Part shown: in pieces, positions 15,639 to 59,696 of the stretch
How the letters are laid out: each line of letters starts with the position of its first letter
Position numbering within the stretch: position 1 is the stretch's first letter
Source: Cyanophora paradoxa CCMP329
Taxonomy: Eukaryota > Plantae > Glaucophyta
Assembly: GCA_004431415.1 (NCBI GenBank)
Contig: QPMI01000200.1
Span: 1 to 64,000 of the forward strand
Direction of reading: 5' to 3'
Length of the DNA: 64,000 bases
The notes under the pieces: generated by a model
What the model was told of the DNA's origin: nothing
Database searches by the model: none
Seen by the model: the letters and a program-made list of their open reading frames with translations, nothing else
Translations under genes and position numbers: made by a program

Positions 15639-15788
15639 TGCGTTCAGCGTAGAACGAGCTAGCTAGCTGTGTACTACGCCTGTCTGGGCTACGCATAGGA
15701 AGGTGCGGCCCTCGCCGTTGCTGGCCCGGCCGTTCCCCCCCGAGGCCCGTAAGGGGAGTAACGCTCCACCCCCGCACGGCCTAGGCCG
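15639..15788. mobile_element. Repeat family A, copy A2 (truncated after 150 bp, followed by captured gene fragments)
   Basis: Same fixed end tgcgttcagcgtag as the other copies. Similarity stops at ctaggccg (15788). Confidence 0.85.
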
Positions 15789-15816
15789 TACACCTTACAC
15801 CTTGTTGCCCACCCCC

Positions 15817-16048
15817 CAACGTCCGTTGTCCTTACATGCTACACCAGCCCTCGAGCTTACACGGAGAGCACCTGTGATGGCAAAAATCGAGGAGGCGCGC
15901 GCACTTCTTTTCGAAACAGACAAATGGCTGGGCCTCCTGGACGAGGTTTTCCTGTTGTTTCGTTATGTCCCTGCTGTTCTTTACGCGCTGTAGGCGCACG
16001 AGAGATCAATCTACACCGATGTGCTGTTCGGACTTTTGAAGGTCAGCC
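15817..16048 (+). pseudogene. Two fused captured gene fragments: 27-kb gene (27384-27500) plus helicase (9322-9435)
   Basis: 15817-15933 is near-identical to 27384-27500. 15935-16048 matches 9322-9435 over 114 bp, including an intron. Confidence 0.95.
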
Positions 16049-19010
16049 TTCCTTGCTGACAATTGGGGGACATCCACGTATTCGCGACCTGTTATTCTTG
16101 ATCGAAACAGGGCAACAAATGCGCAATAAATTTCCATAAGACTGACCGTTTGCAAAAATGTGACGGAGTGATACTGCACTGAGCCCTGCCCAGAGGGCAG
16201 CATACGCAAAGCGGTGTGTTGCAAGCAATGAGTCTGCCATGCACTCACTGGACAGTTGCCAAGAAGTCGAATTTCGAGAACAGACCTTGCGGTGCCAACA
16301 GGGATGCCACTGTCATGACCACACCAACAACGAGGGAAGTAGTTACCAGGCCTTTGCTCTGTTGTCGAACTGGAATTTCAGAGTGGCGGGCTGGAATTAA
16401 TGGAACTCCCTCACCGACAAAGCAGTGTGAGTAACAAATGGAGATGGGCCAGCTGGGTCCGGAATGAAGTTTCCAACAAAAAGATCAAGGGCATCCTGGG
16501 AGAGATGTGATTCGTTTCACGAACTCACAAAAAGGATTATACACGATCACACCTGCTTCTCGCCATCTTTGAAATTGTTCAAATAGTAACGTGTTGCTGG
16601 AAAAAAAAGTAAAATTCAAGCAGGGTAAACGAGGGGATTCGAAGGGCACACCCGAATTCCAGCCATCTTGCAGAGCACCGCGTGTTGTCCGCTTGCCAGT
16701 CCTGCGCATTGTCAGATATGCATGATAACGCAGAACAAGGTGTAGACACGCCTTGTGTAATCTGTCTTAAGAGCTCCAGTTCCAGAGTATTGCAACGACA
16801 CAGCATCCGCATTGTTTGCCCAAACTGCACTGAAAATAAGCAAGAAAGGTCTATCGTGAGTGAATGCCAGAACAGACGATTTTTGAGGAGCGAGTCAAAT
16901 GCCAAGTGAGACTCGATCTTGTCGCTGCCTTCAAAGATGCCGAACCTCCTTAGCTGTTTCACAAGCATCCTTCTGGCGATAAGGGTCTACCAAAACAGTG
17001 AGGTCGTTTCAGTAACCTGCTCTATGGACCGCATACCTGAACGACATTGGTGCGGTCAAGGCAGTCGATGCAATTGGTGCGGATGACGCCTTTTTGAACC
17101 TTAAGGTGCATTAACAATCCTGGTAGCATGCAATCAGCTCGATTTGGAGCGGACCTCGTTGACGCCTTTGTCCGCCAACAGGTATCCGTGAGAGTCCAAA
17201 TCCGCTTCGATCTTCTCCATGAGCAATGACAGTCGGTCATACCTGAGTGCCGTAAGAGGAAACATTCAAAAGCTGGGCCGATGTGGTTCGAACCGCATCT
17301 TGCGACACTCGTGATGGAAGTCAAAAGCCAGATATCTGGGCCATGTGAGTTTACTACAAACATGAAATCCGTACTACAAACCTCAGTTTGCCCCCCTGAA
17401 GGTCCTTTGCGAGTTCATTGGCATGAAGTCCAAACGCCTCACCTGAATCAGATTCAGGAGCACACGAGAGAGATGCACAGCGACAGATCTACCAAGAGCG
17501 AGCTCGGATCCTTTCTGGTCAATCAGACTAACGCAGACCTGTACAATGCTGAGGTCCAAAGCACTCAAACCAAAAAGAAAGCACACCTGGGCCCCATATC
17601 GCTTAATCTGATCCTCAAAATGGGCTCGGAAAGCTGCAGCCTGCAAGAGATCAACGGCAGCAGCAAAAAGCGAATTCAGTTCCGCACTGTGTTGGAGAAG
17701 ATGTTTATGGCAGGTTTCGGTTTGTACTTCAGATTGACAGACTTTTAAAAAACAAAGATCAGCAAACGAATCAGGCAATGCCAATGACGAAACACTGGAA
17801 ATACCTGGTCCCAGTACAAGGGAATAGACCCACGGGTCTGCACGAGAGATGCTGTCCTGTGTTGCCCATCTGCATCATACAGAACGGCCTGAAATGGATA
17901 ATTCGTTTAATGCATCAGGGAAGATAAAGCACGTTTGGTGATAGCGCACCTGCTCAGTCTCAACGTAATTCGACACGTTTCCACATTCATCGATCCCTCG
18001 AGAATGGTACCTCACACCTTTGAAAAAAATCAGTGGGATGTGTCTTTGCAACTTCATCTGACATTTGAAACGAACCACAACGATGGATACTGCGACGGGA
18101 GATAAGCACAATAGTGAAATCCCGCTTGTTAACAGTGCATGGCTCGATCTCGACAACTTGGCAAACAAAAGAAATGAAAGTGAGCTCAAGCAGGTTGGGT
18201 CAACTGCAACACACGCACATCCCATCATTACTGGCAGCACCCAGGAATCTAGTTCAAGGCGGATAAAATCCCGCATCGCATGTTTGTTCCAGAAGAAGCG
18301 GTCGTCGGCCTAGCATGTGTTATGGAGGCAACATGTGTTATGTTATGGGATGAATGTCACCCTCGTGTGCAGTGGCTTTCCCGCAGGGAGGCTCGACTGT
18401 CGCTGGAGACTCTGAGTGATGTCGAACGTGTACGAGAAGTATAGGCCCATGTCCAGCACCAACTTGATCATGTTCGTGTACCGATGTTCATCGGCGCGCT
18501 GCGACCCATGCGACCCATCTTCGATAGGAACGCCAATCGCAGCGGGCATCTCGCACCTGCTGCTCCGACAACGGTCGCAAATTGCGGCCAAAAGAAAGCA
18601 TCTCCGCGCGCTTGATTCTGTAGATGACATGTTCCCGGACGCGCCCCACCTCCTCCCGATCCGTAATCACAAGCAGGTACGGGCCTGGGCAGGCGTGGAT
18701 AAGAGCTCGAGAGGGCTCGCCGCTCTGCAAGTGTGCACCAGCGAGAAGACGCACGACGCCTATGACGCCGTGGATCGACATGGACGCTGCGACCTTGCCG
18801 GCGAATTCGGCGCCTGCGTACGCGGTCGAACCTCGCATTTGGAACCGATCAGACGCCGGTGGCGCGCGCGCGCAGCGCACCGCCCTTGCGGAGCTCGCCA
18901 CTCTGCCGATCGAGGATGACGCAGGAACCTGGGTGGTGTTGCTGCTCCAGAACGAAGCGTTCATCATTGATGAGCAAGTGGACATCCTCGGAAACGGCCC
19001 CGGCGGCCAT
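16006..19010 (-). CDS. SAC1: SAC1-type phosphoinositide phosphatase, multi-exon
   Basis: N-terminus MAAGAVSEDVHLLINDERFVLE. YFSYTFDITQSLQR, DECGNVSNYVETEQ, catalytic CX5R RTNCIDCLDRTNVVQ, WANNADAVSLQYSGTGALKTDYTR. C-terminal TM segments and NGREYVDVPQL. Confidence 0.93.
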
Positions 19011-19056
19011 CACGCCTCAACCAAGCCAACGCACTGCACTGTACCCCCTGTCGCAA

Positions 19057-19640
19057 TCCTGTTGCAATATTAATTGGGAAGTCAACAATACAATATTCCT
19101 GTTGCAATATTAATTGGGAAGTCAACAATACATGTACATGTGTATCATAGTGTATGTATACGTACATGTATATACGCGTACGTATACGTACGTATACGTA
19201 CGTATATACGTATATACGTATACGTATACACGCGTACTACCGTAGTAGTACTTGAGGAGGTACTATAGCTATAGCTACGGTACTTGCAATTGTCATCGAT
19301 ATCAGGATCCCGGATTGTCCGCGACCAGGCCCATGCCACTATATATATATAGCTATAGCTATAGCTAGCGCTAGCTGCACGGAGCCTCGGAGATCGGGAT
19401 CCCGGAAGTCTGAGCCCTTGACAGCTGCACATGCAGGCCTAGGAGGCGTCATGATCATAGCTATAGCTAACTCGATAAACTAAAAAGTTAGTTTAAATTG
19501 TGTCCCGGAGTCCACTGAGTCCAAATGCTCACTGAGTCAGTGCTGAATCGATATCAGACGCTGGTGTTGCGTCGCGCGAACACTAGCTAGCGCTACGTAT
19601 GCATATATATACATGTATAGACAGTATACTTAGTAGCTTG
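19057..19640. repeat. 40-bp tandem duplication plus palindromic hexamer microsatellites ((tacgta)n, (tagcta)n)
   Basis: tcctgttgcaatattaattgggaagtcaacaataca occurs twice (19057, 19097). Runs of tac-gta-tac and tag-cta-tag at 19140-19375. Confidence 0.85.
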
Positions 19641-22313: not shown

Positions 22314-22379
22314 CGGGCCAGGCGTGCCACCGCCGCGACTAGCGGCGGCTAAGCGGCCTACTTTGGGGGTACACGGAAA

Positions 22380-23534: not shown

Positions 23535-23640
23535 GCAATACAAGAGAGCTTACTTGCAGCTTGATGCGACACGCGTTGTCAGCTAGTTGTCTGATTAGCA
23601 GTGTGGGCTGAACTGAGTATCGACAGATGTCGTGGGTAAA

Positions 23641-24240
23641 TGCGTTCAGCGTAGACAGAGCTAGCTAGCTGTGTACTACGCCTGTCTGGGCTACGCATAG
23701 GAAGGTGCGGCCCTCGCCGTTGCCGGCCCGGCCGTTGCCCCCCCCCCGAGGCCCGGAAGGGGAGTAACGCTCCACCCCCGCGACGGCTTAGGCCGCGCGA
23801 GTGTCGTGTGCAGCATCGCGTCGTCGTTCTTGGGCGGTGGGAGTTCCTGCAGGCCGGGCGGGGCCGGGACCCGTCGGTAGCCTGCGGGGGGGCGGCGCAC
23901 GCGGAGGGGGGTCAGATCGGAATTGAAGCGCCCTGAAATCGAAATCGAAATCGAAGGCGCGCACTAGTACTTGGGGAAAGACCATGAAGACCGCATGAAG
24001 ACCAACGCACGCGACTTTCCGAAGTTCGTCCAATTAATTGCAACTTTCGTCCAATTTTCGTCCAACTTTCGAATTCGTCCAATTGCATGGTACTTTCGTC
24101 CAACTTTCGTCCAACTTTCTTCCAATTGTATGGTACTTTCGTCCAACTTTCGTCCAACTTTCAAGTTTCGTCCAACCCCTGATCGTAATCGCAGATCAAG
24201 GACGTCCTAATCGTAATCGCAATCGCAGAAAGACGTCCTG
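23641..24240. mobile_element. Repeat family A, copy A3
   Basis: Fixed end at 23641, body to about 23975, (ctttcgtccaa)n array at about 24025-24176, then aatcgtaatcgcagatcaaggacg modules. Confidence 0.85.
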
Positions 24241-24666: not shown

Positions 24667-24853
24667 CACGCCTAGTCCGGTAGAGCAACAGAAGGCTTAG
24701 ATTTCGATTTCGACCCCGGGCCCCTCGGTTTCGATTTCGATTTCGACATCGATTTGCCTATCCGAGAGAGCCCATGGATTGCTCGGCGAATATAGCTAGT
24801 CCGAACAGCTACTGGGTTACTCAAGACATCGTGTGAGTCACATCTGAAATGCA
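24667..24853 (+). repeat. Repeat family B copy
   Basis: gatttcgacatcgatttgcctatccgagagagcccatggattgctc...gacatcgtgtgagtcacatctgaaatgca. Confidence 0.85.
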
Positions 24854-24918
24854 CCGTCGAATCTCGTCCAACCTAAAGGCGCCCACTAATATTCCTTGTG
24901 TTATGGCTATCCATGAAT

Positions 24919-26988: not shown

Positions 26989-27710
26989 ATGGCGCTCCAG
27001 CAGCTGCAGCGCGCAAATTCCGGTCCGGTTGACATGCAGGAACTTGCGGCTGGAGTCAAAACCGCGTGGGCGGCCACCGTAGCCGGCGCGAGCGCAGCCT
27101 GGACCGCAACAAAGAACTGGTACAACTCCGAATCGGGACAAGCTGCCGTGCAGAAGGTGAAGACGGGGTGCTTCGCAGTGAAAGAGGTGTGTCCTTGATA
27201 AGAAATGAATGAGTTACGGCCGGGCGCGGTCCGATTCAGCTGCAGTCTGATGTTGCAGCCCGCAGAGAGTGGTTTCTGCTAGCGAGGCAGCTGGGCGCGA
27301 GCTGGACTCATCAGCCGTGCTCCAGCACAAATCACGAGAGCTGGCAGTCCTTGTTCGGACTATTCGTGCGCTGTTTCTCGTCGCAACGTCCGTTGTCCTT
27401 ACGTGCTACACCAGCCCTCGAGCTTACACGGAGAGCACCTGTGATGGCAAAAATCGAGGAGGCGCGTGCACTTCTTTTCGAAACAGACAAATGGCTGGGC
27501 TCGGATACGGAGCGTACGATCCTCCTCCCGGTGACCAGCTTCTTCAGGTGCCTGCAGATAGTTTTTTCTGCAGTCCAGATATCGTGTGAGTCATATCTGA
27601 AATGCAGAAAGCTCGTTCTCAACGGAGATCAGGCCGAACGCTTCGCAACTCTCATCACGAGAATTGACCGCTGTATGCTGGACATCCGTGGAATGCTCGG
27701 GAGCTCCTGA
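26989..27710 (+). CDS. Hypothetical protein, multi-exon
   Basis: ATG at 26989 with plausible GT-AG introns joining to ...RCMLDIRGMLGSS*. A diverged copy at 31.2 kb differs mostly at synonymous sites and is joined exactly across intron 27548-27607, which supports both coding status and the intron. Confidence 0.75.
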
Positions 27711-27738
27711 GAAGTTTGCATACTGGACATCCGCGGGA

Positions 27739-28745
27739 TGCGTTCAGCGTAGACAGAGCTAGCTAGCTCTGTACTACGCCTGTCTGGGCTACGCATAGGA
27801 AGGTGCGGCCCTCACCGTTGCCGGCCCGGCCGTTGCCCCCCCGAGGCCCGTAAGGGGAGTAACGCTCCACCCCCGCACGGCCTAGGCCGCGCGCGTGTCG
27901 TGTGCAGCATCGCGTCGTCGTTCTTGGGCGGTGGGAGTTCCTGCAGGCCAGGCGGGGCCGGGACCCGTCGGTAGCCTGCGCTGCGGGTGGCGGCGCACGC
28001 GCGGAGGGGGGTCAGATCGAAATTGAAGCGCCCTGAATTCGAAATCGAAATCGAAATCAAAGGCGCGCACTCGGGGAAAGTGCGAAAGCGCGATCCCTCC
28101 CTGGTCGATTCTGCAGGTCGGCGGAAGCGCGCAGAAGGGGGTCGACGTCAGACAGCGCACGGGAAATCGGGGTTAAGACAGCGCGGCGGGGCGGGCACCC
28201 AGGGGTTCCAATCGATATCCACGCTCCGCGAGGGTAGATTGACGGGCCTCCCAGTGCGAGTGCCTGCACGCGCAGGGTTAAAAATTTACCCGAGGGCACC
28301 CCAACACGGGCGGCGCGCTGGTTCGGCGCGGACTTGCAGCTGGGCGCGCTCGGCCTCGTCGACGTCGGGGAGAAAGTCCAACTTTCGTCCAACTTTCGTC
28401 CAATTTCCGTCCAACTGGTACTTTCGTCCAACTTTCGTCCAACTTTCAGTTTTCGTCGACCGTCGGACGTCCAACCCGTGATCGTAATCGATATCGATAT
28501 CGCAGATCAAGGGAACGCGTACGCGTATACGTACGCCCACTAGCTAATCGTAATCGCAGATCAACAATTGCAAAGCTAAGACGCCCTAATTACGATCGTA
28601 TACGTAATCGCAGATCAAGGACGCCCCAATCGTAATCGCAGATCAAAGCTAAGACGCCCTAATTACGAAGAAGAAGAGTATGTATAAGACACGCCCAAGC
28701 CAGCCGTACGGGTAACGTTAACGAACGTTGATTCGTTAACGTTCG
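27739..28745. mobile_element. Repeat family A, copy A4 (longest, about 1 kb)
   Basis: Fixed end 28 bp after the upstream stop. Full GC-rich body shared with A6, (ctttcgtccaa)n at about 28377-28475, aatcgtaatcgcagatcaag modules, aacgttaacg. Confidence 0.87.
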
Positions 28746-28772
28746 CCCAAACAGGGGTACACAATACCGAAA

Positions 28773-30612
28773 ATGGGCCCGAAGCTTGACCCCAAGGACT
28801 TCATCTTCTCGAAGCAGAAGGGTCAGACCTTGATCAAGAAGCCCGGGAGCATCGATGGGTGTGCCGGCGCCGTGCGCGGCGCGCGCGTATCGTTGCATCC
28901 TTTGACCCCACCGAAGGCAGCAGTTCATCATCGAGGATCTCGAAGACTGCGAGGTCTACTTGTTGGACTGGTCGGCCCAGGTCTCCGTCGACTGCTGCAA
29001 AAACTGCCGCTTCTTCATTGGTCCGTCGGCGTCCCGCACGGCACCCACGACGCGTCCGACCGGCCCCCGTGCGCTCACAGGTCCTGTCGAGGGGTCCATC
29101 TTCTTCCGCAACTGCGACGACTGTGTCATAACCGTTGCATGGTCGGCCTTTCCAGACAAGCAGCCGCCCTTTTCTAATCCGTTGCCGTCACAGCGCTCAG
29201 TTCAGGACCAGGGAGTGCAACCGATGTACGTTGACCTTGTCGGGGTCGCGTGCCCCTACGGTTGACAGCTTTCTGAGCCGGCTGCGCAGGCGATGTCTTC
29301 CTCTTCGCGGGCACGGAGCCGGTCGTCGAGGCATCTTCGAGCATGCGATTTGCGCCATGGTGTGCTGTCTTTCGCGTGTTCGGTTGTTTGCTGCTAACGC
29401 CCACCCCTCGCAGGAACGGGGCTTACCCATGCGCGTCTGCGCACTTTGCCGCCGCAAAGCTGAACCCGGCCGACAACCGATACGCGGCCGTGTTCGACTT
29501 CAACAAAGACGACGACTCCATCCCCATGCCCCACTGGGCCCTGATGCCCGCGGATGAATTCAAGGTTCGACCCGCATCTAATCCGACGCTCGACCACTTC
29601 CTGACAGTTCTTAGCCTGCCGAAGTTCCCCTCGACGGCGAATTCGGTCCTGTTGAGAACCCTGTCTCCGAGGCGCCTGCGTCTGGCGCGCCTGCGGTGCG
29701 ATCCCCTCTTTTAGCTGTCGGCCCGTACTGAGCGAGTTTTCAGGCAACGAGCGCGGACGGCGGCATGATGAGCTTTGATCTTTCTATGTCGCAAGCGGAG
29801 GTGCCGTTCTGCGTGTCGCATTTCGTTTCGAAGCGCGAAATCCGAACCCCCTGCAGGCCGAGGCGATCCTTGCGGAGAGGGACGAGGTAGGGTCCTGTTG
29901 CTTTCCATTGCAAGATTCCACTGAATGATGTGTCGCCCCGCACAGGCTCCGAGCGTCTTCAATGCTCCAGCTGCTGCCAACCCGGTATTCCCCCCCCCCC
30001 CACACACACACACACACACACACACCCTTCTTGCGACCCCAGGGCTCACATTGCAGGCAGGCAGCACCAATCCCCCTTTCGTCGCCATCCTTCTCGAACT
30101 CTGTTCCCATGCCGCCCGTTCACACTGGCCCTGTGCGCCCCACCACCCTGGGTTCTGAGATGCTGTGCCCAACGAGCTCCTTGCAGACGGACAAGGACCG
30201 AGCGGAGGAGGCGGAGAAGGCTCAGCGCAGGTGATTGATACGCCCCGTTGTGCCGCCGCGAGTGCTCATGGTGTTGCAGGAACAAAGGCGAAGAAGAGCT
30301 TCGCAACGCGCGTGCCAGCTGGGAGGACAAGGCTGGCAAGCTCCGCGAGTCACACAAGTGCTTTTTTTTCCGCGATGTCTCTTTGCTCCCAACCGATGCC
30401 CCCATAGGAAGGCGGATCCTGGTCGTTTCGCATCGTACAGCTTTGTACCTCTGCCAAACAAGTGGGAATCTATTTGTGCCCTCATCGACAGTGTCGGTGC
30501 CTCTGGAAAGGCCAAGGAGGGCGAAAAATCGAAGGAAGTGGAGGGCAAGCGTGACGCCTCCCGCCTCCGCTCCCTCCTTCTGAGTCTCAAGCACAACCCG
30601 GCCCGCATCTAG
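28773..30612 (+). CDS. RP2: RP2/XRP2-like TBCC-domain protein with a C-terminal clathrin-light-chain-like domain
   Basis: MGPKLDPKDFIFSK..PGSIDGQQFIIEDLEDCEVYLLD..FIGPVEGSIFFRNC..QFRTREC (TBCC catalytic Arg). C-terminus NKWESICALID...RDASRLRSLLLSLKHNP. Confidence 0.85.
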
Positions 30613-30790
30613 TTAATTTTGAGTACTCAATCAGCATTTGGACAGCGCTGGAGCCTCAAATCAAATCGCAGTCCATTCTTGACTGGACAAATTCGTCGAT
30701 GCTAGAGTCATGACAAATTCGTCGATGCTAGATTTTGAGCTTACGAGCTTGAGATTTTCAAAACTGAAGTGGCCAGTGTGGGATGTTACC

Positions 30791-31188
30791 TGCGTTCAGC
30801 GTAGACAGAGCTAGCTAGCTGTGTACTACGCCTGTCTGGGCTACGTGTAGGAAGGTGCGGCCCTCGCCGTTGCCGGCCCGGCCGTTGCCCCCCGAGGCCC
30901 GTAAGGGGAGTAACGCTCCACCCCCGCACGGCCTAGGCCGCGCGCGTGTCGTGCGCAGCATCGCGTCGTCGTTCTTGGGCGGTGGGAGTTCCTGCAGGCC
31001 AGGCGGGGCCGGGACCCGTCGGTAGCCTGCGGGGCCGAGACAACGCACGCGCGGAGGGGGGTCAGATCGGAATTGAAGCGCACTGAAATCGAAATCGAAA
31101 TCGAAGGCGCGCACTCGGGGAAAGCGCGAAAGCGCGATCCCTCCCTGGTCGATTCTGCAGGTCGGCGGAAGCGCGCACGAGGGGGGTC
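30791..31188. mobile_element. Repeat family A, copy A5
   Basis: Fixed end tgcgttcagcg at 30791. Body truncated at about 31188 and fused to captured fragments. Confidence 0.87.
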
Positions 31189-31383
31189 AATCGAGGAGGC
31201 GCGCGCACTTCTTTTCGAAACAGACAAGTTGCTGGGCTCGGATACGGGGCGCACAATCCTTTTGCCGGTGACCAGCTTCTTCAGAAAGCTCGTTCTCAAC
31301 GGAGATCGTCCGAAGCGCACAGCCATGCGCTTCAGCGATTCCACAATGCCCTCGAAGACAACCTGCGCATGCATTAAGTGCCG
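31189..31383 (+). pseudogene. Captured fragments: intronless copy of the 27-kb gene plus an IF2 fragment (34082-34151)
   Basis: 31189-31314 corresponds to about 27452-27637 minus intron 27548-27607. 31314-31383 matches 34082-34151. Confidence 0.93.
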
Positions 31384-31915
31384 ATGTTACCTGCGGCGCC
31401 ATCGCTGCGGGCGCAGCCCATTATAATTAGCAAGCTGGCTCCCGTAGTCTTTGAGCAGTGGCGCAAAACCTTGAAGGATCAGATGATCAGCCATGCAGGA
31501 TCGAACCTCAAATCAAATCTATAATATTAATATAAGGGCGTCTTAACTTAAAGTTGGCCCGGGCCTGGACCATGGGCGCCGGCCTTGAATTCGAAGGTTG
31601 TACATATATATTGTACCCCCCGTGCAGACCGGTACGGGGGTCACCAGGCGGGCCTGCGAGGCGTGCAATATCCGCGTACACGAGGCTTTAACGTGACAGC
31701 CAGCAAGGTGCGAGGTTTGCGACATCTGCGTACGCGAGGCTTCACCGTACGGCCAGGCGACAGGCTCGAGCCTACATTCTTCAAGCCTGCGGCGGTCAGT
31801 GCGTCTCAGTAGCGCCCTAGTCCGCGACCTGACGAAGGCGCCAGACTTCAGCGACTTCAGCGACTTCAGAGCCTGCGCGTCAGTCTAGACCACGTACACG
31901 CTGCAAGTCGCGCAA

Positions 31916-33207
31916 ATGCTGCTACGTCTAGCGCAAGAGAAAATCCGCGGGCTGGGCCGCTTCTCAGCGCAGCCCGTCGCTTTACCAAGCAGCCCCTCTC
32001 CTGCGGAGCTGTGGACTGCCGTCTCTCGCAGTGACGTTCCTAGGATCGAAGAGCTTCTGTCCCAAAAGGTCGATTTGCTCGCCGCGAACTCCGATGGCTT
32101 TACAGCGCTGCATCTGGCTAGCCAATCCGGTAATGTTCAGGTTCCCAATTTCCTTCGAATTCGAAGTCTTGGTGCTGCATCTGGCCAGCCAATCCGGTAA
32201 TGTTCAGGTTCCTTCGCGTAGGTCACCTCGATGCTGCTTCGGGCAAAACCCGAGCTTGTCAAGCTAAAAAATGTGCATGGTGACACTGCATTGATTATAG
32301 CGTGCAAACAGGGCCATCTGAAGATAGGTGCTCATCTTGCCCTCCATCTTTTTCCGCTTGTAATCTTTTTTCTTTTTCCCCATGCAGCGGAAATGATTCT
32401 TCAGAAGGGGGGCGACCCAAATGCAAGTAACAATTTTAGATCGACGGCTCTCCATGAGGCAGCCCGTAAAGGAGACCACGACATATGCGAGCTGCTGTTG
32501 AACTCCAAAGCCAACCCTCTATTCCCTGACTGTGCGTCTGCTTCGTGGAGCCAGCACACTGTAAAGCCTCACTGTGCCCTTCAGATTTAGGAAACACGCC
32601 GGCCGCGCTGGCGGCCGACGGGGGCCATCTGAAGCTGGTCGAGTTCCTCCTGAAGGCCGACCACACCACTGTCAACGTCAAGAACGCCCTTGGAAACACC
32701 ATCATGCATGTGCGCCCCCAAACCTTGTATTTGGATCTGGACTAGCTGAGGTTCGGGGCAGTTCGCTGCACAGCATGGGTCGGTGGACTTGATGCGGCTG
32801 CTTTTGAGCATTGGGGCATCAGCGGGCGTGAAGAACAACAGGGGCAACACCCCGCTCCACCGCACGTGCCTTTTCTAGCTCCAGAGGCTGGCCACCATCG
32901 ATGCATATGCACAGGGGCAGCGCTCTTTGGGCACGTCGAGGCGGCTAAGGTCCTCCTCGGCGCAAACGCTGACCCCCACACTCAGAACCGTTTGCGACCT
33001 CAACTCTTGCGCTGTGTTAATTCTGACCGCATGGTGCAGAGTTCGAGGAGACCCCGATCGCCCTCGCCATTGAGTACAAGCACCCCGAGGTGCTCCTCCG
33101 TTGGTTTGAAATGCAGGCAGCTGCCCACAAAGTCGCAGGTCGCCGAGCTCCTGCTTAAGTCGTCGAGAAACCTGGCTGCTGCTTCAGAACGAAGCATTCA
33201 TCATTGA
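31916..33207 (+). CDS. Ankyrin repeat protein, multi-exon
   Basis: Repeats GFTALHLASQSGN, GDTALIIACKQGH, STALHEAARKGD, GNTPAALAADGGH, GNTIMH, GNTPLH. Confidence 0.88.
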
Positions 33208-33813
33208 TGAGCAAGTGGACATCCTCAGAAACGGCCCCGGCGGGGGCGGGGGTGGGGGCTTTAGCTTTGATTTGGATCTGAGGCTGGGCTTTCGATTTGG
33301 ATCTTTGATTTTGACTCCACGCTCCTTCTCCCCATCCCCATCCCCCCCCTCTCTCCCCCCCCCCCCCCCCCCCATCCCCCCCACATCGATATCCCTGTCC
33401 CTGCTCGCCCCCCCCCCCCCCCCCCTCCCTCTGCCCCTTCCCGACCCTCCCCCTCTCCCCCTCGCTTGTGCTGCGTACACCCCGTTGATTTGCAATTGGA
33501 GACTCTCGAAAGTTGTGGTTTCAGGCGCTGGAGAGGCTTTCCAATTGATTGATTCAGGCGTTCAGGGGCCATCTGAATACTTCTTCTCTTGGCACGAGCA
33601 TTTGATTCTGAACGGTGGCGTGGTCTGATTCAGCTTGGGAGACATCAAGAGCTCCGCTTTCGAGCTGCCGCTTCCGCATACGACCACCCGCTGATTAGCT
33701 AAGCACTCTAATCAAAGTCCAACCCTCCCGTCAAACCTCCGGGATCCAACCTGAAATTGGGGATCCAATTACCTGAAATCCAACCTGAAATTGAATCGAA
33801 ATCAAAGACTACC

Positions 33814-41922: not shown

Positions 41923-42699
41923 TCATCCCGTAAGATCTACAGACTTTCCCCACTGTATCCCAATCTTATTCAACCTGCCCTGTTGTGTGCCTTTAATTCA
42001 CGAATCGAAATTAAAGCACTGTGAAGCTTAGTTCACATGAATTCAGAATCGAATTTAAATTAGAGCACCTTAAAGTGCCAGTCAGGAGCGAGGGAGAGGC
42101 CTCATTCCTCAAGAGCGAGGGACAGGCCTACAGCTACTGATGGGGCACATTGGCCAGCTGAGCCAGCTGTAATGATGCACTCCGTAAAATTGCACATTGG
42201 ATGCACTGACAAACTTTTGAAACATCCAATTCCGCTCACCTAGGCCTAGGCACCTTGGGCCATGATTTCAAATTTATGATTCAATGATTGTATCGTACTA
42301 CGGTAGACTCTGGGACGGCAAGCACACTTCGGATCGGAGCTCTGGCATGGTTCCGAAGTTCTGCAGGCCATGGGCCATTGCCGAGTCACTGAGTCGCCGC
42401 ATGCGTGAGCAGGGCCGGGCCGGGTGGACGTCCTTCTGTGTCGCCCGTAATGTGCATTGCGCTCAGCGGCTAGGAATCATCAGCACCCTATCCTATGATC
42501 AGAGAATTGACTCCGAGGCTCAGTGAATTGATATCGCGATCGATATCAGAGACACAATTGCAAGAGCACATCATATGGCATTGCCAAGTTGTCTACTAGG
42601 CTAAGTCTCGGAGACTCCGAGAAAAAAACCTATATATATATAGCTATAGCTAGCCTTTTCAGATTGAGCAGAGCGCACTGATATGATCAATTTGATCAC

Positions 42700-43230
42700 A
42701 GTGATCAAGCTCATGATCACCTTGAATTTTTGACCCCGAGGCTCAGTGAGGGCCCCCGGCCCCAGGCTATTGCCAAGCCTTGAAGTTACCAACGGCGAAA
42801 CGCAGCAGGAGACGGCCGCGGCCGCTCATGCAGTGCCACGGTGATCAACTTGATCAAGCTCATGATCACCTTAATTTTTGACCGTCGGACTCCGAGGCTC
42901 AGTGAGGGCCCCCGCGGCCCGGCCCCGGGCTATTGCCAAGCCTTGAAGTTGCCAACGACGACACGCAGCAGGAGACGGCCGCGGCCGCTCATGCAGTGAT
43001 CAACTTGATCAAGCTCATGATCACCTTAATTTTTGACCGTCGGACTCCGAGGCTCAGTGAGGGCCCCCGCGGCCCGGCCCCGGGCCATTGCCAAGCCTTG
43101 AAGTTGCCAACGACGACACGCAGCAGGAGACGGCCGCGGCCGCTCATGCACTGATCAACTTGATCAATTGCAAGCTCATGATCACCTTAATTTTTGACCC
43201 CGAGGCTCAGTGAGGGCCCCCGGCCCCGGG
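42700..43230. repeat. Tandem repeat, unit about 150 bp, about 3.5 copies
   Basis: Unit tgatcaagctcatgatcacctt..tttttgac..ccgaggctcagtgagggcccc..attgccaagccttgaagtt..gcagcaggagacggccgcggccgctcatgca starts at about 42702, 42851, 43006 and 43161. Confidence 0.92.
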
Positions 43231-43557
43231 CGAAATCGCCTTCCCGCTCTGGTCGCTGCAGAGCTTTGAACGGCCCCGGACCACGGCGCTTGTTGTCCGA
43301 CGGTCAAGCACATCCTCGATGCTGATTGCCTTGTCGATGAGGTTGCGGTACTGTCGATCAAGCTTGTACCAGAGAACCGTTGAACTGCAGCTGACTTGAC
43401 TCGCCGGTGCAAGTCCGCAAGCTTGCTTTCGCTTGCGCCCACGATCTCCTTGAAACGATCATCTCGTGCGCCTGCGCGCGGTCGATACTGTTCTGGGAGC
43501 CTTGCCACAATTTTGTTCACGAAAACCTGCAATCCGATGATCGTGAGTTTTGATTCA
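43231..43557 (-). pseudogene. Captured exon fragment of the LMBR1-domain gene (56096-56397) with three 8-bp insertions
   Basis: Colinear with 56096-56397 except for three 8-bp insertions, one substitution and one extra T (by eye). Confidence 0.95.
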
Positions 43558-43905
43558 TTCCGGACCCCGGGGGCCCGCGCAGTGTCAGCTGGCCCAGTGG
43601 CGGCCCAGCTGGCCAGTACTAGTGTGGATCATGCCATGATGAAGAGAGCGCTGGAAATTAAACGAATCGAAGAATTTCAGTTACAAAATCATTGAATCTT
43701 CTCGAGGAAACAAGCCTACGCGTACGCATCCATGCTTGAAAGTGCTTCAAGTACATGCGCATGGCCATATATATGCATGGGCGGCTGCAGCTGCAGCTGC
43801 CGCAGCTGCAGTGCGTCTGACATCGCATTTTTTTCTGACCCCATTTCTCCCCCCCGCCTCTCCGATTTAAAAAAGCGAGCGAGGAATCGCCGAGGATCCC
43901 GGAGG

Positions 43906-47311: not shown

Positions 47312-47686
47312 GCCGTCTTTTCGGCGTATGAACTGCACGGCGTGCGGGACCTGCACCGACGCCGTCCAGGTGCCGACCCGACACTGTGCCCCCGCCCGCT
47401 GCTGCGTCTCTCTCTCCCTCTCTGACGAGAGGCCTGGGGCGTCTAGAGCGGACTGGAGATGGAGCACGCGCCCCCGGTCCTGCTAAGGGGGTACTTAAGA
47501 CTTGATCATGAGTCGCCTGCGCGGGTCAACACGCTGTCACTGCGCAAGACGGCAGTCCACAGCTCCGATGTAGGCTAGCAGCTAGCTAGCTGCATCAAAG
47601 TGCGATGCAATCCTACGACACTGGTCCTCTTGGCACTTCCATTTTCAGTCATCCTGTTGAATTCCTCTCCCTGCCGCAGTGCTGGG

Positions 47687-47877
47687 CAAGGCACGCAAGC
47701 CTGCCTGGTAGAGCAATCATTGAATAGACTTTGATTTCGATTTCCGACTACTCGGTTTTGATTTCGATTTTGACGTCGATTTGCCTATCCGAGAGAGCCC
47801 ATGGATTGCTCAGCCTGGGTCCGAACAGCTACTGGGCTAGTCCAGATATCGTGTGAGTCGTACGGTATCTGAAATGC
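47687..47877 (+). repeat. Repeat family B copy
   Basis: gcctgcctggtagagc...gacgtcgatttgcctatccgagagagcccatggattgctc...agtccagatatcgtgtgagtc..tctgaaatgc. Confidence 0.85.
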
Positions 47878-47925
47878 TTCGGATCTAGAGTGGGGCCGAA
47901 ATCTGGTCAATCGAAGCAACTGCTG

Positions 47926-51912: not shown

Positions 51913-52484
51913 CCAGCCACGCGCCGGCGGTGCGCGTAAGGCTGAGAGGGCTTGGGCAGCACTATTATTAATAGCAAGCAAGCAGCCCGCTGCGCTGCGT
52001 AGCTCAACCGTGCATTGGATGCCGCGGGTTTCGATACCCCCCGAGTCCTTCAAGTTGAAGTAGGCCTGCCGCCTGTACTCTGTGAGGAAGGGCCTCCGTA
52101 CACAGTATCCGCCAGTTGCACACAGCCGCGGCGCACCACGCTGGTTTCTAAAGGGACGGGCAGCTAGGCGGTTCCGTTGTTTCAACGAAAGGGTCGGCGG
52201 CGTATCGCTCGGGAAGGAGGGCTGGGCCGCGCTGCGACGAGGCGCGCGCCTCGGAGGGTGTGCGACGAGTTTCAAAAGCTCTCAGCGCCGAAAACCTGAG
52301 CAGCGAGCGGCAGATTGCAAGTAGCGTACGTGCATAGCTCCGTCCAGCGTCTGCAGTCGATTACAGGTGCTCAAACGCCTGCAGGGCGATGCAGGCCCCT
52401 GGCGGCGGAGCGGGGCATGCTCCTCAGGCCCGGCCGGCTTCATCGAACACGTCGAGCCAAGCGGCGAGCCTAGCGCGATCAAAC

Positions 52485-53640
52485 ATGTCTGCGGCCATAC
52501 GCGCCAGAGTGGTGAAGATCGCGACGTGGTGCGGGTTAACCGTATCCAGCCTCGACTTGGTGCAGGAAATTCACGAAACTATTATTTGCGGGTGCAGGCT
52601 CGGCATTATTCACGTCTTTGTGGGTCCGCTTGATTGCGTAAGAGAATATCGTAATCTAATGTACTTCAAGAGCTGAAGAGGAATCTTGCGAATCAGAGGT
52701 CGCAATTCAAATTCCCATCCTTATCGTCAGCTGGGACAGCGATTTCTCACAACCACTCCGAACCTGGATCCTCGTTCGAGTGAACCATTCTTGCTTACAT
52801 TCAAGCTGATGTTCGCGATTGATCTTGATTGATCTTGCAGGCATGCGCTCAAGTTGTCGGAGTTTCTTTTGATCTGGCGGTCTTTTTTTCTCCGGCCCTC
52901 CAAGACTCGAGTGAGGGGAGGGAGCCCAGGGAACATCAGATTTCTTCAAAGCTCAAGCACTCTTTTAAGTTTTGCAGGAGATGTCTAGCGTACTTTTACC
53001 TCGCCTGGTTGGCCACGGGCCTCGTGTGGGTTGTGAGAGAAAACAACCGCAATCTTCTCTACTCGCTTTGCATCGTGCTCATTGCCGTGGTGAGTGGTCC
53101 CACTCTTGCTTACATCACTTGCATTTCAGATATACACACGCGTTATCACTTTCAGACACTGGTGCTCCTGGCACTTCCAGCCATCTTATTGCTTTCAGTA
53201 TGCTTGTGCATGCCACTTGTGATTGTGCTTCTGAGCCGTTTCTCTGAGCACGTTCCGCAACCTGGACAGGCGCGACCTTTTTTGAGCATGCCGTTCTGTG
53301 CATTTCGCTGAATTTTTTCGGTTTTGCAGCAAGCTAACCGAAACCAGATTGACCTGCTTCCTAGTTTGAAGTACGAGGTGGGGATGATGGCGCCCGATGA
53401 TGCCTTGTGTGTCATGTGCCTCGAGGAATACTCGGATGGGCAAACATTAAGAAAGCTCCCGTGTACACATTTCTTCCATCAGGTGCTTCATATCTTCCAT
53501 ATCAACCTAAGCGTTCGACATGCTATTTACAGATCTGGGCTTACCTGTACGTTCAGGCCTGTATAGACAGATGGCTTCTCATCCGATCAAAATGCCCGCT
53601 TTGCAATCGCGATATTGTCGGAGGAGAGATCGAAGTATAG
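52485..53640 (+). CDS. Transmembrane RING-H2 E3 ubiquitin ligase, multi-exon
   Basis: N-terminal TM segments. RING-H2 CVMCLEEYSDGQTLRKLPCTHFFHQ|ACIDRWLLIRSKCPLC. Confidence 0.88.
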
Positions 53641-54407
53641 ACCATCCAGCAATCAAACATCGTGATGGCTACTCTCGTGATCGAAGCATAGGCGCCTCGC
53701 CCTTCACACCACAGCTAGCTATAACTCTGTTTTGGAACCCGGCGACGCCTGACCCGGACCCTCAATGGGGAAAAACAGACCATTGTCAGCCCGCCTGACT
53801 GATCCCTCCACAGCAGAGGGTCAACTACCCCATCTGCAAGACCCCGTCCAAAGGCAGCCTACGCACTGTGTTATGTTGTTGAGAAACTGGAGGTAATTGC
53901 GTTCCAAAGTAGGCCCCGCTGTTCCCGCACCGTGGCAGCGAGCTAGGGACCGTCCCCAAGAAGGAGAGTATGTATAATCATATTTAAGCTTAAGACATGC
54001 CGCCAATCGCAAGCAGGCCTTGGCATTTGGGGGACGTTGGGAGGCGGGGTCCGCGAGGGGCAGGTGCCAGCTGCAGGTCCCAGAGTGCTCTAGCTCGGAT
54101 GCTGCTTTCAGCCGCCATCTCCTCCCACCTGCGGGTCGGGGGCATAGGGCTGGCCATGGTGCGGGTCCTCTGGGGGGTGCAGTTCAGGAAGTCGGAGAGC
54201 AATGTAATGGAGACTAACGTGTGCAAATTAACGTCTCCCCTCCCAACCTACACTCCCCCACCTTCCCCCCCCCCCCCCCTCCTCCCCTCCCCCCCTTCCT
54301 CCCCCCCCCCCCCCTTCCCTCCCCCTCCCTTCCCTCCTCCCCCTCCTCCCCCCTCCCCCCCCCTCCCCCCCTCAATCACATGGTTTGGTACACACACGAG
54401 GATGAAA

Positions 54408-57177
54408 TCATGGGCGTGGCAGCATCGTACTTGCGGGGTCCGTGCCTCTCATACCGACGACCTGGGGCGAGTCAAATGGGCAAAGGAGGGATAGAGGCTC
54501 GGACACCTGCAATAGCTTGTTTGATACTGAGCGAGCAATGTGCCTTGCACTCTCCATTACATTGTCATCCGGGTCTTCGGGTGCCACGGGCATCGGGACT
54601 GAAGCTCGGGGGTTGGATGCATCTGGATCGCCCAGATCACTGCGGCGCATGTTCTCAACGAGCTTGACGGTTGCTTCCGAGGCACGTGGCCTGACAGCCC
54701 ATGAAAACCTGCTGTTCCCTGCCAGAGGGCGCTCCTTCAACACTGGAGAGGCGCCGGTGGCCTCTACATCCAGGGCATCGGACGAAGCTCGTCTGGCGAT
54801 GACAAACGGGGCTGCAGCGAGATGCCCATCTGTGCTCGCAACGGAGGACTCGACTGATGGTGGCCCTGGAGGCCGAAGACCAGAGCTGGTGCCCGGATTG
54901 AAAGAGTTGTGCACAGGACTATAAGGAGGAGCAGAAACCATCGAGACCGCCTCCGTATCAGACGGTGGTGCTGGGGCTGGAATCCCAGCACCACCAGTTG
55001 GTGAAGCAAGACCAATCCCAGCAGCACCAACCTGATCACTAGGGCGCTTCACCTGGAGGGATGCATGAGCTAGGACAATCAAACATACAAATTCCATACG
55101 CAACGCGCTCACATAGAGCTTTTCTTGCGCTGCCCTAGCCTCGCGCCGCTGTCTTGCAGAGCGTACGATATCCCGACCACGGGACATGAGTTGTGCACTG
55201 TACTCCTCATCGACCTGTGTGGAATAAGCGCTTCACGCAAAATACGTTACAGCAAGTGGCACGCCTGCAAAAACTTCAGGCGGAGGTACTCCGAGAGCTT
55301 GCCGAAGGCGCCCAGGAAGGTGAGGAGTGCGGAGATGAGCACAATCGTACACACAAGATACGGAAGCCACGAGTTGAAAGCTGCAATCGCTTCGTCCATG
55401 GGCCGGAGAATAGCCTGCTCGATACAGATCGTGTTACGAGATGGAGCAACTAGAACGCCTTCAGCAGACCTGGTAAGCAGCTGTTTCTCGAGTGATGTTG
55501 AAAAGCGTGTAGAAGTGGAATGTGGATGCCGCAATCACCTAGAGTGGGCTGCGATGAGCACAGGAGACGAGAAGAAGAATACACAGCGCAAATTTGCCAA
55601 ACGACCTTCAGGGAGAGATACGCGTTCATGAGAAGCGACCAACCGTCCGAGTTCCCAGGTAGCAGGTCGTAAGTATTGAAAAACTGCAACTGCTATCAGA
55701 GCCCCGAAAGTGATGTGGAGTTCAACGTATGTAACAGACCTTCATCTTGAAGAGGCCGGCGTGGATGCAAAGGCACATGTAGCTCATGATGAAGATTGCA
55801 AGGAGCTGTGGATGGAGGTTACGATATACAATGACGGAACAGAAGAAGTCTTACGGACTTGCAAAGCGTAGGACGGCAGAGGCTTGGAAATAATCATGGA
55901 GAAGACAGAGATCCCAGCGAACGGCGTAGATGCCTCCGAGGCAAGCATGAGCAACGAGAGGCCCATAAAGAACACAGAGAGTATACGCGAGCCTGAATAA
56001 TCTTAAGGCCTGTGTGACGAATGTGCAGGGGGTTCACGAACCCACGGGTTTGATCCAGCAGCGCCACCACCATTCCATCTTGTCGAGGAAGAGACCGAAA
56101 TCGCCTTCCCGCTCTGGTCGCTGCAGAGCTTTGAACGGCCCCGGACCACGGCGCTTGTTGTCAAGCACATCCTCGATGCTGATTGCCTTGTCGATGAGGT
56201 TGCGGTACTGTCGATCAAGCTTGTACCAAAGAACTGCAGCTGACTTGACTCGCCGGTGCAAGTCCGCAAGCTTGCTTTCGCTTGCGCCCACGATCTCCTT
56301 GAAACGATCATCTCGTGCGCCTGCGCGCGGTCGATACTGTTCTGGGAGCCTTGCCACAATTTTGTTCACGAAAACCTGCAATCGTGAGTTTGATTCACTC
56401 AAGCACGTCGGACAAGCGAACCTGGAGGTTTTGATCGCGAGCCTCGAGAAGCTGTATGTACGCCGACAGCTCAGCAACCAGCTCTTCGAGATCCGAGTCT
56501 GCCTTGTTTAAATTCATTGAAGTGAGCATGACCTGCAGAGTGAAAGTTATGGAATGTGAGAATTCGCGCGCAACAAAGCTGGGCTGTACCTTGTACTCAA
56601 TGCGCTTCAGCCTTGTGCTAAGACTCCCATTGTACCAGAGAGACTTGGGGAAGTCAACAAGGCCATGGCCAAAGAGCACGACGACGAGCAAGAGGTTGAA
56701 GAGGTAGCTAAGCGCATAAATGAGGCCCATAAAGCGGTCGAGTGACATTCGGCCCGTGAAGAGGATCCAGAGGAAGAACGGCGCCAAGACAACAATGCCC
56801 CCGATAAGCCAGATCACGTTCTGTTTCAAAGCGTACATGCATCGCCCACGCCAGTTAAACTCCCCAGCCTGGATGTAATCCGTCATGAAGGAGATGATCC
56901 CTAGTTGGAGGACGATGACAGTCCAGTACACAATGAGCCACAAGGTCGTGAGAATTGTCGAGTTGGCGAGCTCATCGGGAGTAACCTGTGGGACCGCACG
57001 GCCGTCGATAACGCCCTGGAGGTCCACTGATGCGAATGCAACCGTGGAAAACGAAAAGAACCAGCTCGCCGCGACGACAGTGGCAAGATATGTAGGCAGC
57101 CGCGGCTCGCTGTAGTAGAACGTGAGGACACAGCATACGACCGCAACGACAACGATCTCAACAACGAGCTCGATCAT
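54408..57177 (-). CDS. LMBR1-domain membrane protein (LMBRD2-like), multi-exon
   Basis: Multi-TM N-terminus, WLIVYW, DYIQAGEFNWRGR..ALKQN, LFGHGLVDFPKSLW, LADLHRRVK, FNSWLPYL. The 3' end is approximate. Confidence 0.82.
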
Positions 57178-57553
57178 TCTTCAAGATTGAAGGGAAGCCG
57201 TCGTGCGTGCGGGGCGCTGGATCGAGCGTCCACAGCGTCGACCAGGCCGCCTCAAGCTATTCTGGGCGCATGCACTGCACTGTAAATGACTACGTACACG
57301 CCTGTCCGCTGCAGCGCTCCGAATGGCGACGTGCAGCTTCGGTGCAGCGCTTTCTAGCTACTGCACGGCTGCGCGAGCGGCGCGTGTGCTGGGGCCGTTG
57401 CTATGCGCCTCGGTGCAGCGCTTGCGGTTCGACTGGGTGACGCCGACTCGATGCGAGTGCGAGCAGCGCGAGACGAATTTGCACCCGTACCCTGGATGCG
57501 GCTGCTTCGGCGGTGACGTGCAAGCCGCCCACGGCTCAGCGACGTCCTCGGAC

Positions 57554-57823
57554 GGCGGCCTATCGCTCGGGAAGGAGGGCTGGGCCGCGCTGCGACGAGG
57601 CGCGCGCCTCGGATCGAGGGCGTGCGACGAGCCTCGGAGTTTCAAAAGCTCCCAGCGCCGAGGACCCGAGCGGCCCAGCGGCCGAGCAGCGGCCGAGCGG
57701 CAGATTGCGAGTTGCGTACGTGCATAGCTCCGTCCAGCGTCTGCAGCCCCTGGGCCTCTGTGAGGCGATCCCGTTCGGTGAGCGTTTCGGTGTGTGATCT
57801 CAATCTGCAGCGATTGCAGGTGC
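57554..57823 (+). repeat. Diverged duplicate of the kelch/RING intergenic (promoter) region 52195-52371
   Basis: tatcgctcgggaaggagggctgggccgcgctgcgacgaggcgcgcgcctcgga...gcgtacgtgcatagctccgtccagcgtctgcag is shared, with several insertions. Confidence 0.9.
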
Positions 57824-58201
57824 GGCGACTGTCGGCGAGGGGACTCGGGGAGCCGCTGAGCGCGCTATATAGCTAGCGTCGACAATTTGAGAGTGTTCAA
57901 GTACAACTGCAAGGGGCGGCGCCGTGCAGCGTCGACAATTCGGACTCCCGAGTCCGAGTCACTGAGTCTCCGGATCCGACGCTCATATATATGCATGATG
58001 TCCGGATATGATCCGCTGAGTTGCACATTGATAACACTGGCATACTAGCCGGGGACAACGCAGGCTAGAAGCGGCGGTGCTACCTACGGGGGCGACAAGC
58101 CGCGGACGACGCAGGCAGGGCCCTCTGAAGGGGGGCGTGCACTCGTTTTCGTTTTCGTTTTCGTTGTTCGAATTCGTACGTTTCGTTCCTGGCCCAGCCG
58201 T

Positions 58202-58325
58202 GCCAGAGTGGTGAAGATTGCGACTTGGCTGGGAACTTCGGAATATTTCACGTCTTCGCGGGTTTCGCTATTGCATAAATGTTTCGAGCTCAATGAGTCA
58301 GTCGACGTCTTGGAATCAGAGCTCG
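58202..58325 (+). pseudogene. Diverged fragment of the RING gene 5' end lacking intron 1
   Basis: gccagagtggtgaagattgcgacttgg-ctggga..ttcacgtctt joins the exons flanking 52529-52597. Contains an 8-bp insertion at 58233-58243. Confidence 0.8.
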
Positions 58326-58384
58326 AGGTTGCTGTTCAGTACTAGTGTACATATGTATACGTACGAGCCTGGCAGTCTTGATCG

Positions 58385-58953
58385 CGACCGCCCAGGTCCG
58401 CGCTGACCCAACGCGCCGCCTGCGTTGGAATGCCCTTGGGTCAACCCCGCGCGAGCAGGCGCTCGCACTGGGAGGCCCGCCAATCTACCCTCGCGGAGCG
58501 TGGATTGGACTCCGGGAACCCCTGGGTGCCCGGCCCGCCTCCGATTTCGCCTGCGCTGGCTGACCCCCCTCTGCACGCTTCCGCCGCCCTGCAGAATCGA
58601 CCAGGGAGGGATCGCGCTTTCGCGCTTTCCCTGAGTGCGCGCCTTCGATTTCGATTTCGATTTCAGGGCGCTTCAATTCCGATCTGACCCCCCTCCGCGT
58701 GCGCCGCCCCCCCGCAGGCTACCGACGGGTCCCGGCCCCGCCGGGCCTGCAGGAACTCCCACCGCCCAAGAACGACGACGCGATGCTGCACACGACACGT
58801 GCGCGGCCTAGGCCGTGCGGGGGTGGAGCGTTACTCCCCTTACGGGCCTCGGGGGGGAACGGCCGGGCCGGCAACGGCGAGGGCCGCACCTTCCTACGCG
58901 TAGCCCAGACAGGCGTAGTACACAGCTAGCTAGCTCGTTCTACGCTGAACGCA
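58385..58953. mobile_element. Repeat family A, copy A6 (inverted)
   Basis: Reverse complement of the A4 body, ending ...ctacgctgaacgca at 58953. Confidence 0.88.
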
Positions 58954-59368
58954 GGTAACATCCCACACTGGCCACTTCAGTTTTGAAAATCTCAAGCTCG
59001 TAAGCTCAAAATCTAGCATCGACGAATTTGTCATGACTCTAGCATCGACGAATTTGTCCAGTCAAGAATGGACTGCGATTTGATTTGAGGCTCCAGCGCT
59101 GTCCAAATGCTGATTGAGTACTCAAAATTAACTAGATGCGGGCCGGGTTGTGCTTGAGACTCAGAAGGAGGGAGCGGAGGCGGGAGGCGTCACGCTTGCC
59201 CTCCACTTCCTTCGATTTTTCGCCCTCCTTGGCCTTTCCAGAGGCACCGACACTGTCGATGAGGGCACAAATAGATTCCCACTTGTTTGGCAGAGGTACA
59301 AAGCTGTACGATGCGAAACGACCAGGATCCGCCTTCCTATGGGGGCATCGGTTGGGAGCAAAGAGACA
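58954..59368 (-). pseudogene. Inverted copy of the RP2 last exon plus 3' flank (30376-30790), attached to A6
   Basis: Near-identical reverse complement of 30376-30790, giving the same translated ...SLKHNPARI* ORF. Confidence 0.95.
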
Positions 59369-59696
59369 GGCGTAGTACACAGCTGGCAGCTGGCTAAAAT
59401 CGGGGCTCATGATCACGTGCACATGCACTGCGCATGCATGCGCAACTGATCAGGCTTTCAAAGTTTGATTTAAATTTGGATTTGGGCAGCAAACTTTTTG
59501 AAATGGGCTGCAATGCGGATCCGATGATCTCTGAGAGCTGAGGCTGGCCATCGATATCATAGCATGGGGGCAGGGGCTTTATAATTAATGGGGCTGGCCA
59601 TTGAGGCTTAGCCCTCAGGGCCTGGCTGCCGCAGTGCCCAGCTATCGAATCAGTGCTAGCGCTCAGCGGCTGTCCGGCTATCGCTGAGTCGTACTG

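Follow-up and report, generated by a model that had tools for sequence, protein, structure and literature searches.

The window examined here, the first 64,000 nucleotides of contig QPMI01000200.1 of Cyanophora paradoxa CCMP329, holds a patchwork of short copies of genes that lie on the same chromosome end. We suggest that this patchwork is, on balance, probably the product of DNA-level copy-and-join synthesis on nearby DNA, that is, of repair-mediated duplication or synthesis-dependent filler insertion with template switching. Each piece has one other place, and that place is closely linked, as in repair-mediated duplication (2.8–28.6 kb from donor to copy for all eight donors). About half of the events sit at the ends of a dispersed repeat, here termed family A. 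The process as such is already known (vertebrates, 2009); the window is an unusually dense example of it, with a possible link to one repeat family.

Local donors and their copies

Donor-copy pairs were detected by BLASTN self-comparison of the window, where all of them have E-values of 1e-23 to 1e-137, identities of 80–100% and lengths of 67–415 bases. The donors lie in intact genes (DEAH helicase, IF2, LMBR1, RP2-like, SAC1 and RING) plus a small gene, X. Donor pieces fall in frame-preserving exons of conserved genes, and the copies lie in spacers, the SAC1 piece excepted. The copies are arranged in two chains, plus single pieces (SAC1 at 33177, LMBR1 at 43231, RING upstream at 57550 and R, from the RP2-like gene, at 58954–59368):

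9322–9435, plus strand: DEAH helicase donor; end of one exon (15 nt, ..IILDE), a complete intron of 44 nt, an exon of 48 nt, then 7 nt from the following intron
15935–16048, plus: helicase copy; 114/114 identical to 9322–9435, preceded by one extra C
27384–27710, plus: X donor gene, small and expressed; start codon 27445, stop 27708–27710, 60-nt intron at about 27548–27607
15817–15933, plus: X copy of chain 1; 98.3% identical to X 27384–27500
31189–31318, plus: X copy of chain 2; X 27452–27547 (90.6%) fused to 27608–27641 (26/26)
34082–34155, minus: IF2 donor; 7 nt of intron, a 41-nt exon and 26 nt of upstream intron
31314–31387, plus: IF2 copy; 97.3% identical to 34082–34155
18940–19006, minus: SAC1 donor; 5' untranslated region (UTR) and first 15 codons
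33177–33243, plus: SAC1 copy; 95.5% identical, antisense, inside the last exon of an ankyrin-repeat gene
56096–56400, minus: LMBR1 donor; 286 nt of exon and 19 nt of upstream intron
43231–43560, plus: LMBR1 copy; about 99% identical at aligned bases, with three 8-base insertions
52192–52365, plus: RING-H2 upstream donor, ahead of the gene (probable start 52389)
57550–57755, plus: RING upstream copy; 80% identical with gaps, about 93% at aligned bases, with 4-, 8- and 20-nt insertions; an older copy
30376–30790, plus: RP2-like donor R; 32 nt of the last intron and the last exon/3' end of the RNA-supported gene 28774–30816
58954–59368, minus (inverted): R copy; 415/415 identical to 30376–30790

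The pairs listed in a first-pass annotation of this DNA were reproduced at 80–100% identity, except that the match of 52503–52529 to 58202–58228 is weak, with only 27 bases (E of about 7e-5 in a restricted search). Its account of short, often chained fragments also held. It had called the patchwork intergenic, which is true of most copies, and the SAC1 piece departs from this by lying in an exon of an expressed gene. Its statement that all donors lie within this chromosome end applies to the pairs visible in the window and does not reach beyond it.

Identities of 80–100% imply a range of ages, and the process is therefore ongoing. Two copies (15935–16048 and 58954–59368) are 100% identical to their donors, and the process should therefore be observable in culture lines. 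Relative to its donor, each of the seven pieces counted as not linked to family A lies in direct orientation; these independent events are too few for a test.

The locality of the donors is not an artefact of ascertainment, since a search within one window can hide remote donors but has no means of generating eight local ones. Random draws of donors from a genome of about 100 Mb (PMC6704402) would yield fewer than 0.1 local pairs, even with all spacer DNA counted as inserts; eight were seen.

Chains and junctions

Within single chains, pieces from non-adjacent donors are combined:

15639–16048, plus: chain 1; family A 1–150, 28-nt filler, X 27384–27500, extra C, helicase 9322–9435
15789–15816: the 28-nt filler between the A and X pieces of chain 1
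30791–31387, plus: chain 2; family A 1–398, X 27452–27547 and 27608–27641, IF2 34082–34155

Junctions show 0–5 nt of microhomology or filler of 1 nt or 28 nt, and no A or T tracts occur at them. The breakpoints thus carry the microhomology and filler of repair-mediated duplication and lack a poly(A) tail. For the 28-nt filler and the chain flanks, only chance-level 11–14-mers were found in the window as possible sources; a 14-nt match between 43555 and 16455 was likewise dismissed as chance.

Both chains begin where a copy of family A breaks off, and the R copy abuts precisely the exact end of another A copy; the first-pass annotation had described several fragments as fused to these repeats. 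The AGACA microhomology that it reported at 59364 is real: these 5 nt (59364–59368) join the R copy to a fragment of the A head. The A sequence adjoining the R copy differs by about 4% from that beside the donor, and R itself is identical over 415/415 positions; R was therefore copied onto a different, resident A. The copying of R used A homology on one side and the AGACA microhomology on the other.

A 13-nt direct repeat, GATGTTACCTGCG, at 30782–30794 and 31383–31395 brackets the A, X and IF2 pieces of chain 2, and it shares its last 4 nt with the start of family A. An X piece immediately follows the truncated A in each of the two A-linked chains, and the X donor gene itself abuts the exact end of an A copy (c4 below).

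Read support and copy number

Read support was taken from DNA contigs of two short-read runs, X1 (2012) and X3 (2024), and from RNA contigs, with 27350–33349 as the stretch covered. Contigs of single-copy depth from both DNA runs, made 12 years apart, cover 31198–31363 and 31354–33349 and bridge five junctions: X|X', X'|IF2, IF2|flank and both ends of the SAC1 piece. In addition, 30376 is the precise start of a contig with double the single-copy depth, and the R boundary is therefore confirmed, with two R copies genome-wide.

Depth is about twice single-copy over the X, R, IF2 and SAC1 pieces. Outside family A and its internal short repeats, extra depth in the 6 kb is always explained by a partner in the window, which is a small but real test that counts against the worry about ascertainment. 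The chains in this stretch are single-copy; they have therefore neither been amplified nor moved on.

That the joins are assembly chimeras, the check that the first-pass annotation had called for, is scarcely credible. Repeats do adjoin several of them, and reads cover one stretch, but single-copy contigs of two independent runs span the five junctions, and the pieces are short, lie within unique sequence and have diverged unequally.

Unspliced templates and the intron of gene X

The templates were unspliced (DNA or pre-mRNA), because four pieces carry intron sequence: the whole 44-nt intron of the helicase piece, which separates the exons for ..IILDE and AHER.., 7 nt and 26 nt in the IF2 piece, 19 nt in the LMBR1 piece and 32 nt in the RP2 piece. 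The intron flanks of IF2 were placed by protein-level reading and an RNA contig; a reading of this piece as one exact exon was rejected, because intron sequence of 7 nt and 26 nt flanks the exon. The first-pass annotation had favoured DNA templates on account of retained introns and the chaining of both senses; the retained introns do point to DNA or unspliced templates, with one intron-less X copy.

That copy, in chain 2, lacks exactly the 60 nt that RNA contigs show to be spliced out of X. However, this copy is the second oldest (about 91–93% identity), and the last 37 nt of the X intron are the exact terminus of a second dispersed repeat, family B:

5812–5979, 24667–24853, 47685–47878 and 59689–59797: copies of family B

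All family B copies end in ...TCTGAAATGCA and diverge immediately beyond; no GCA-anchored flanking repeats were found at them. Because of this terminus and the age of the copy, gain of the intron in the donor after copying appears considerably likelier than an RNA template for the copy at 31189, whose origin from spliced RNA we have accordingly downgraded. X may thus be a candidate for intron gain by insertion of a repeat tail, in which an older, intron-less copy in the same window would preserve the state before the gain.

With the exact end taken as the 3' end, families A (27738–27810) and B (24790–24853) each show a hairpin followed by TGAA(C/AT)GCA. Hairpin and motif are possibly a recognition tail shared by the two families; for family B, the one copy folded gave a weak hairpin.

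The intron-less X piece also enters a reading of the chains as reverse-transcriptase template-switch chimeras, in which a target-primed LINE-type enzyme would copy A RNA and hop to nearby RNAs, including pre-mRNAs. The 13-nt flanking repeat, as in target-primed reverse transcription, the combination of one exact end with truncation in family A, and the absence of exactly the RNA-verified intron from the piece at 31189 are consistent with such an origin. Nevertheless, we consider it improbable. Four pieces retain intron sequence, and senses are mixed: with the exact end of A as the 3' end, X and the helicase are antisense, and with the opposite sense IF2 is. No A-rich or simple tail was found at the joins, the flanking repeat occurs once, and the absence of the X intron is better explained by its later gain. 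Moreover, the RING upstream region, which is probably untranscribed, was copied as well.

Family A

Six copies of family A in the window share an exact boundary, at 13161, 15639, 23640, 27738, 30791 and, inverted, 58953:

13161–13373, plus: copy c1; head, with distal A modules at 13435–13765; internally deleted
15639–15788, plus: copy c2; its 150 nt begin at the exact end; starts chain 1
23640–24238, plus: copy c3; internally deleted, both ends present
27738–28662, plus: copy c4; longest of the six at about 925 nt; the hairpin head is followed by 11-nt and ~25-nt internal repeats
30791–31188, plus: copy c5; first 398 nt; starts chain 2
58380–58953, minus (inverted): copy c6; about 600 nt; head variant as in c2, unlike that of c5
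59364–59384, minus: A-head fragment; 21 nt, A positions 27–47; joined to R via AGACA

A 15-bp hairpin lies 8 nt inside the exact boundary, and the far end was set at about 28662, where c3 and c4 diverge. The ends read TGCGTTCAG... and ...AAGACGCCCT, with A, A, T, A and C as flanking bases. Neither an open reading frame nor a protein-coding remnant was found in family A, nor was a terminal inverted repeat: the head motif occurs once per copy and never, inverted, at the unrelated far end. A search of 5690–64000 against Rfam at gathering thresholds gave zero matches, hence none in A or B. Repeats flanking the A copies comprise the 13-nt one at c5 and a weak, imperfect one at c3; none of at least 7 nt is present at c1, c2 or c4. 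Family A is thus a dispersed element with one invariant hairpin end, one ragged end and internal deletions, the structure that defines one-ended elements of the Helitron2/Fanzor type.

Two further observations concern the surroundings of individual copies. A 56-nt local duplication (12921–12976 and 13083–13138, 94.6% identical) ends 22 nt from the exact end of c1. The RNA contig of gene X (27605–27749) ends 12 nt into c4, and DNA contigs (27574–27767) reach 30 nt into it; the 3' end of the X transcript may lie in the A head. The idea that A always sits just past the 3' end of plus-strand genes was rejected, as the gene beside c2, PsaL, is on the minus strand.

One-ended copying and cargo transposition

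The structure of family A raises a serious alternative, though one we regard as unlikely: the A-linked chains would be products of one-ended transposition of family A (rolling-circle or HUH-type, possibly Fanzor-associated), and the pieces without A a separate phenomenon. Copying would start at the exact hairpin end, stop early, acquire extra sequence by template switching and end in integration with a target-site duplication of variable length. The exact hairpin end and the ragged opposite end agree with this proposal, as do the internal deletions of c1 and c3 and the bracketing of A, X and IF2 by the 13-nt repeat with its shared 4 nt. In the two DNA runs, summed contig depth over the first 200 nt of A is about 40–90 times single-copy (not a copy number) and declines to 10 and then 3 times further along, and the contigs show many different flanks meeting the exact boundary.

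Precedent exists in the Helitron2/Fanzor1 elements CRe-1,2,3 of Chlamydomonas, which are 5'-truncated and internally deleted with one end intact, and which have target-site duplications of 7–19 bp and, where they are truncated, 'short extra sequences' (Bao and Jurka 2013, PMC3627910). Family A closely resembles them: one end is intact with a hairpin, the other ragged, and it has internal deletions and added sequence where it is truncated. It differs in that the window shows neither a Fanzor or Rep gene nor a T-rich target, in that a flanking repeat resembling a target-site duplication is present in only one of six A copies, and in that the extra sequences are identifiable as pieces of genes a few kilobases away.

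Several of our observations do not sit well with one-ended transposition. A flanking repeat was not found for c1–c4, apart from the weak one of c3, and no coding sequence for Rep, helicase, TnpB/Fanzor or reverse transcriptase was found in or beside the A copies of the window. Unlike cargo that has been mobilised, the chains occur in single copy and draw on local donors; no A adjoins the SAC1, LMBR1 or RING pieces; and an already resident A copy received R at its exact end.

That family A is instead a cargo transposon of the Pack-MULE, Pack-CACTA or classical Helitron kind, which captured the fragments and then moved, is very improbable. Such elements, which the first-pass annotation had named as analogues, likewise carry chained, intron-bearing gene fragments in both orientations beside a repeat, and one direct repeat of 9–13 nt does flank chain 2. 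However, the defining termini are absent: there are no terminal inverted repeats and the ends of A are unrelated, as opposed to Pack-MULEs and Pack-CACTAs, and the termini are not 5'-TC/CTRR-3' and have varying flanking bases, as opposed to classical Helitrons, which insert at an A/T dinucleotide. Furthermore, the chains replace element ends instead of lying between them, each chimera is single-copy and unamplified, and all donors are linked.

Copy-and-join synthesis and its precedents

Returning to copy-and-join synthesis, we envisage that a broken or free 3' end would be extended on chromosomal DNA 3–30 kb away on the same arm, would occasionally hop to a second or third template through 0–5 bases of microhomology or a little filler, and would be sealed after synthesis. 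For the A-linked half of the events, the free ends would most likely come from one-ended copying by A or from nicking at its exact end. The first-pass annotation had proposed generic break repair that samples local templates; local bias and chaining agree with this, but the A-linked half faces the alternative of one-ended copying. In a variant that we think unlikely, and less likely than one-ended transposition, an activity directed at element ends (a transposase or RNA-guided nuclease) would cut A termini, and the ends would be extended on spatially close chromatin, such that a selfish repeat would drive local shuffling. If so, cutting at A would lead to continuous local shuffling of exon, UTR and promoter pieces, would occasionally rebuild gene ends (as in the ankyrin gene) and would make introns via repeat tails (as in X).

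The copies, their unspliced state, their junctions and their low copy number are direct observations; the break, the direction of copying, the polymerase pathway and the part played by family A are inferred. A number of points weigh against copy-and-join repair. The donor distances exceed the usual <5 kb of the vertebrate precedent. The 13-nt repeat looks like the target-site duplication of a single insertion, and suits synthesis coupled to transposition better than plain repair. Repeated use of X is not predicted by random local sampling, and the intron-less X piece leaves room for an RNA template in the case of that copy.

The closest precedent is the repair-mediated duplications of vertebrates, in which the pieces average 162 bp and reach 619 bp, donors are proximal, chimeras join two donors, and filler and microhomology occur (Pace et al. 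2009, PMC2671141). In both cases, insertions derive from closely linked single-copy DNA (50–619 bp there) and include two-donor chimeras, with breakpoints that carry microhomology, filler and small deletions; the duplicated parts include exons, UTRs and splice sites, and the process runs continuously through time (PMC2671141). In contrast to the window, most donors there lie within 5 kb, 824 duplications were detected across the human genome as compared to about eight events in 58 kb here, half of our events adjoin the ends of a single repeat family, and our pieces counted as unlinked to A keep a direct chromosomal orientation.

Filler DNA and insertions made at plant and animal breaks by polymerase theta, or by MMBIR (microhomology-mediated break-induced replication), are similar to the patchwork in that they consist of templated patches, with microhomology-guided switches and multi-template patchworks. 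Typical templated inserts of polymerase theta and MMBIR are much smaller and have templates far nearer the break. Thus, of the analogy with polymerase theta drawn in the first-pass annotation, the likeness to templated repair holds, but pieces of 67–415 nt from 2.8–28.6 kb away are too large and too distant for short inserts from flanks; only the small end pieces of 13 nt (31383) and 21 nt (59364) would suit that enzyme.

Consequences at recipient sites

The antisense SAC1 piece lies in the last exon (33137–33347) of the expressed ankyrin gene and supplies about its last ten codons and the stop. Copying presumably ran from SAC1 to the ankyrin gene, in which case an expressed gene has already had its end rebuilt by proximal copying. 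If the window is typical, short proximal copy-paste would be a major source of new sequence in a compact, intron-rich algal genome, by which exons, splice sites, start regions and promoters would shift over a few kilobases. It may also explain part of the many small duplicates in the published assembly (Price et al. 2019, PMC6704402). The link to the ends of family A would offer a concrete handle on the origin of the breaks.

The LMBR1 copy is joined inside a unit of a 155-bp tandem repeat (42684–43231). It differs from its donor by about three substitutions and three 8-nt palindromic insertions of the form XYZ-C-revcomp(XYZ)-G-XYZ, where XYZ is GTC, AAC or ATC. Units of the adjoining tandem repeat are distinguished by the same type of insertion (GAC).

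Setting of the window

Genes were recognised by Pfam matches of single open reading frames or exons, taken individually rather than as joined spliced models. These matches comprise a plastid-type sigma factor, DEAH helicase, IF2, LMBR1, SAC1, a further LMBR1 exon and PsaL; the RP2-like, ankyrin-repeat and RING-H2 genes were recognised from translations read directly. The first 5,689 bases of the window are CCCTAA telomere repeat, beyond which the DNA is gene-dense with numerous GT..AG introns of 44–81 bases, in agreement with the short introns and tight gene packing of the published Cyanophora paradoxa genome (PMC6704402). One family B copy begins about 120 nt or less past the telomere repeat (window 1–5979). 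Long C-rich tracts of low complexity are present at 33320–33465 and 54235–54373.

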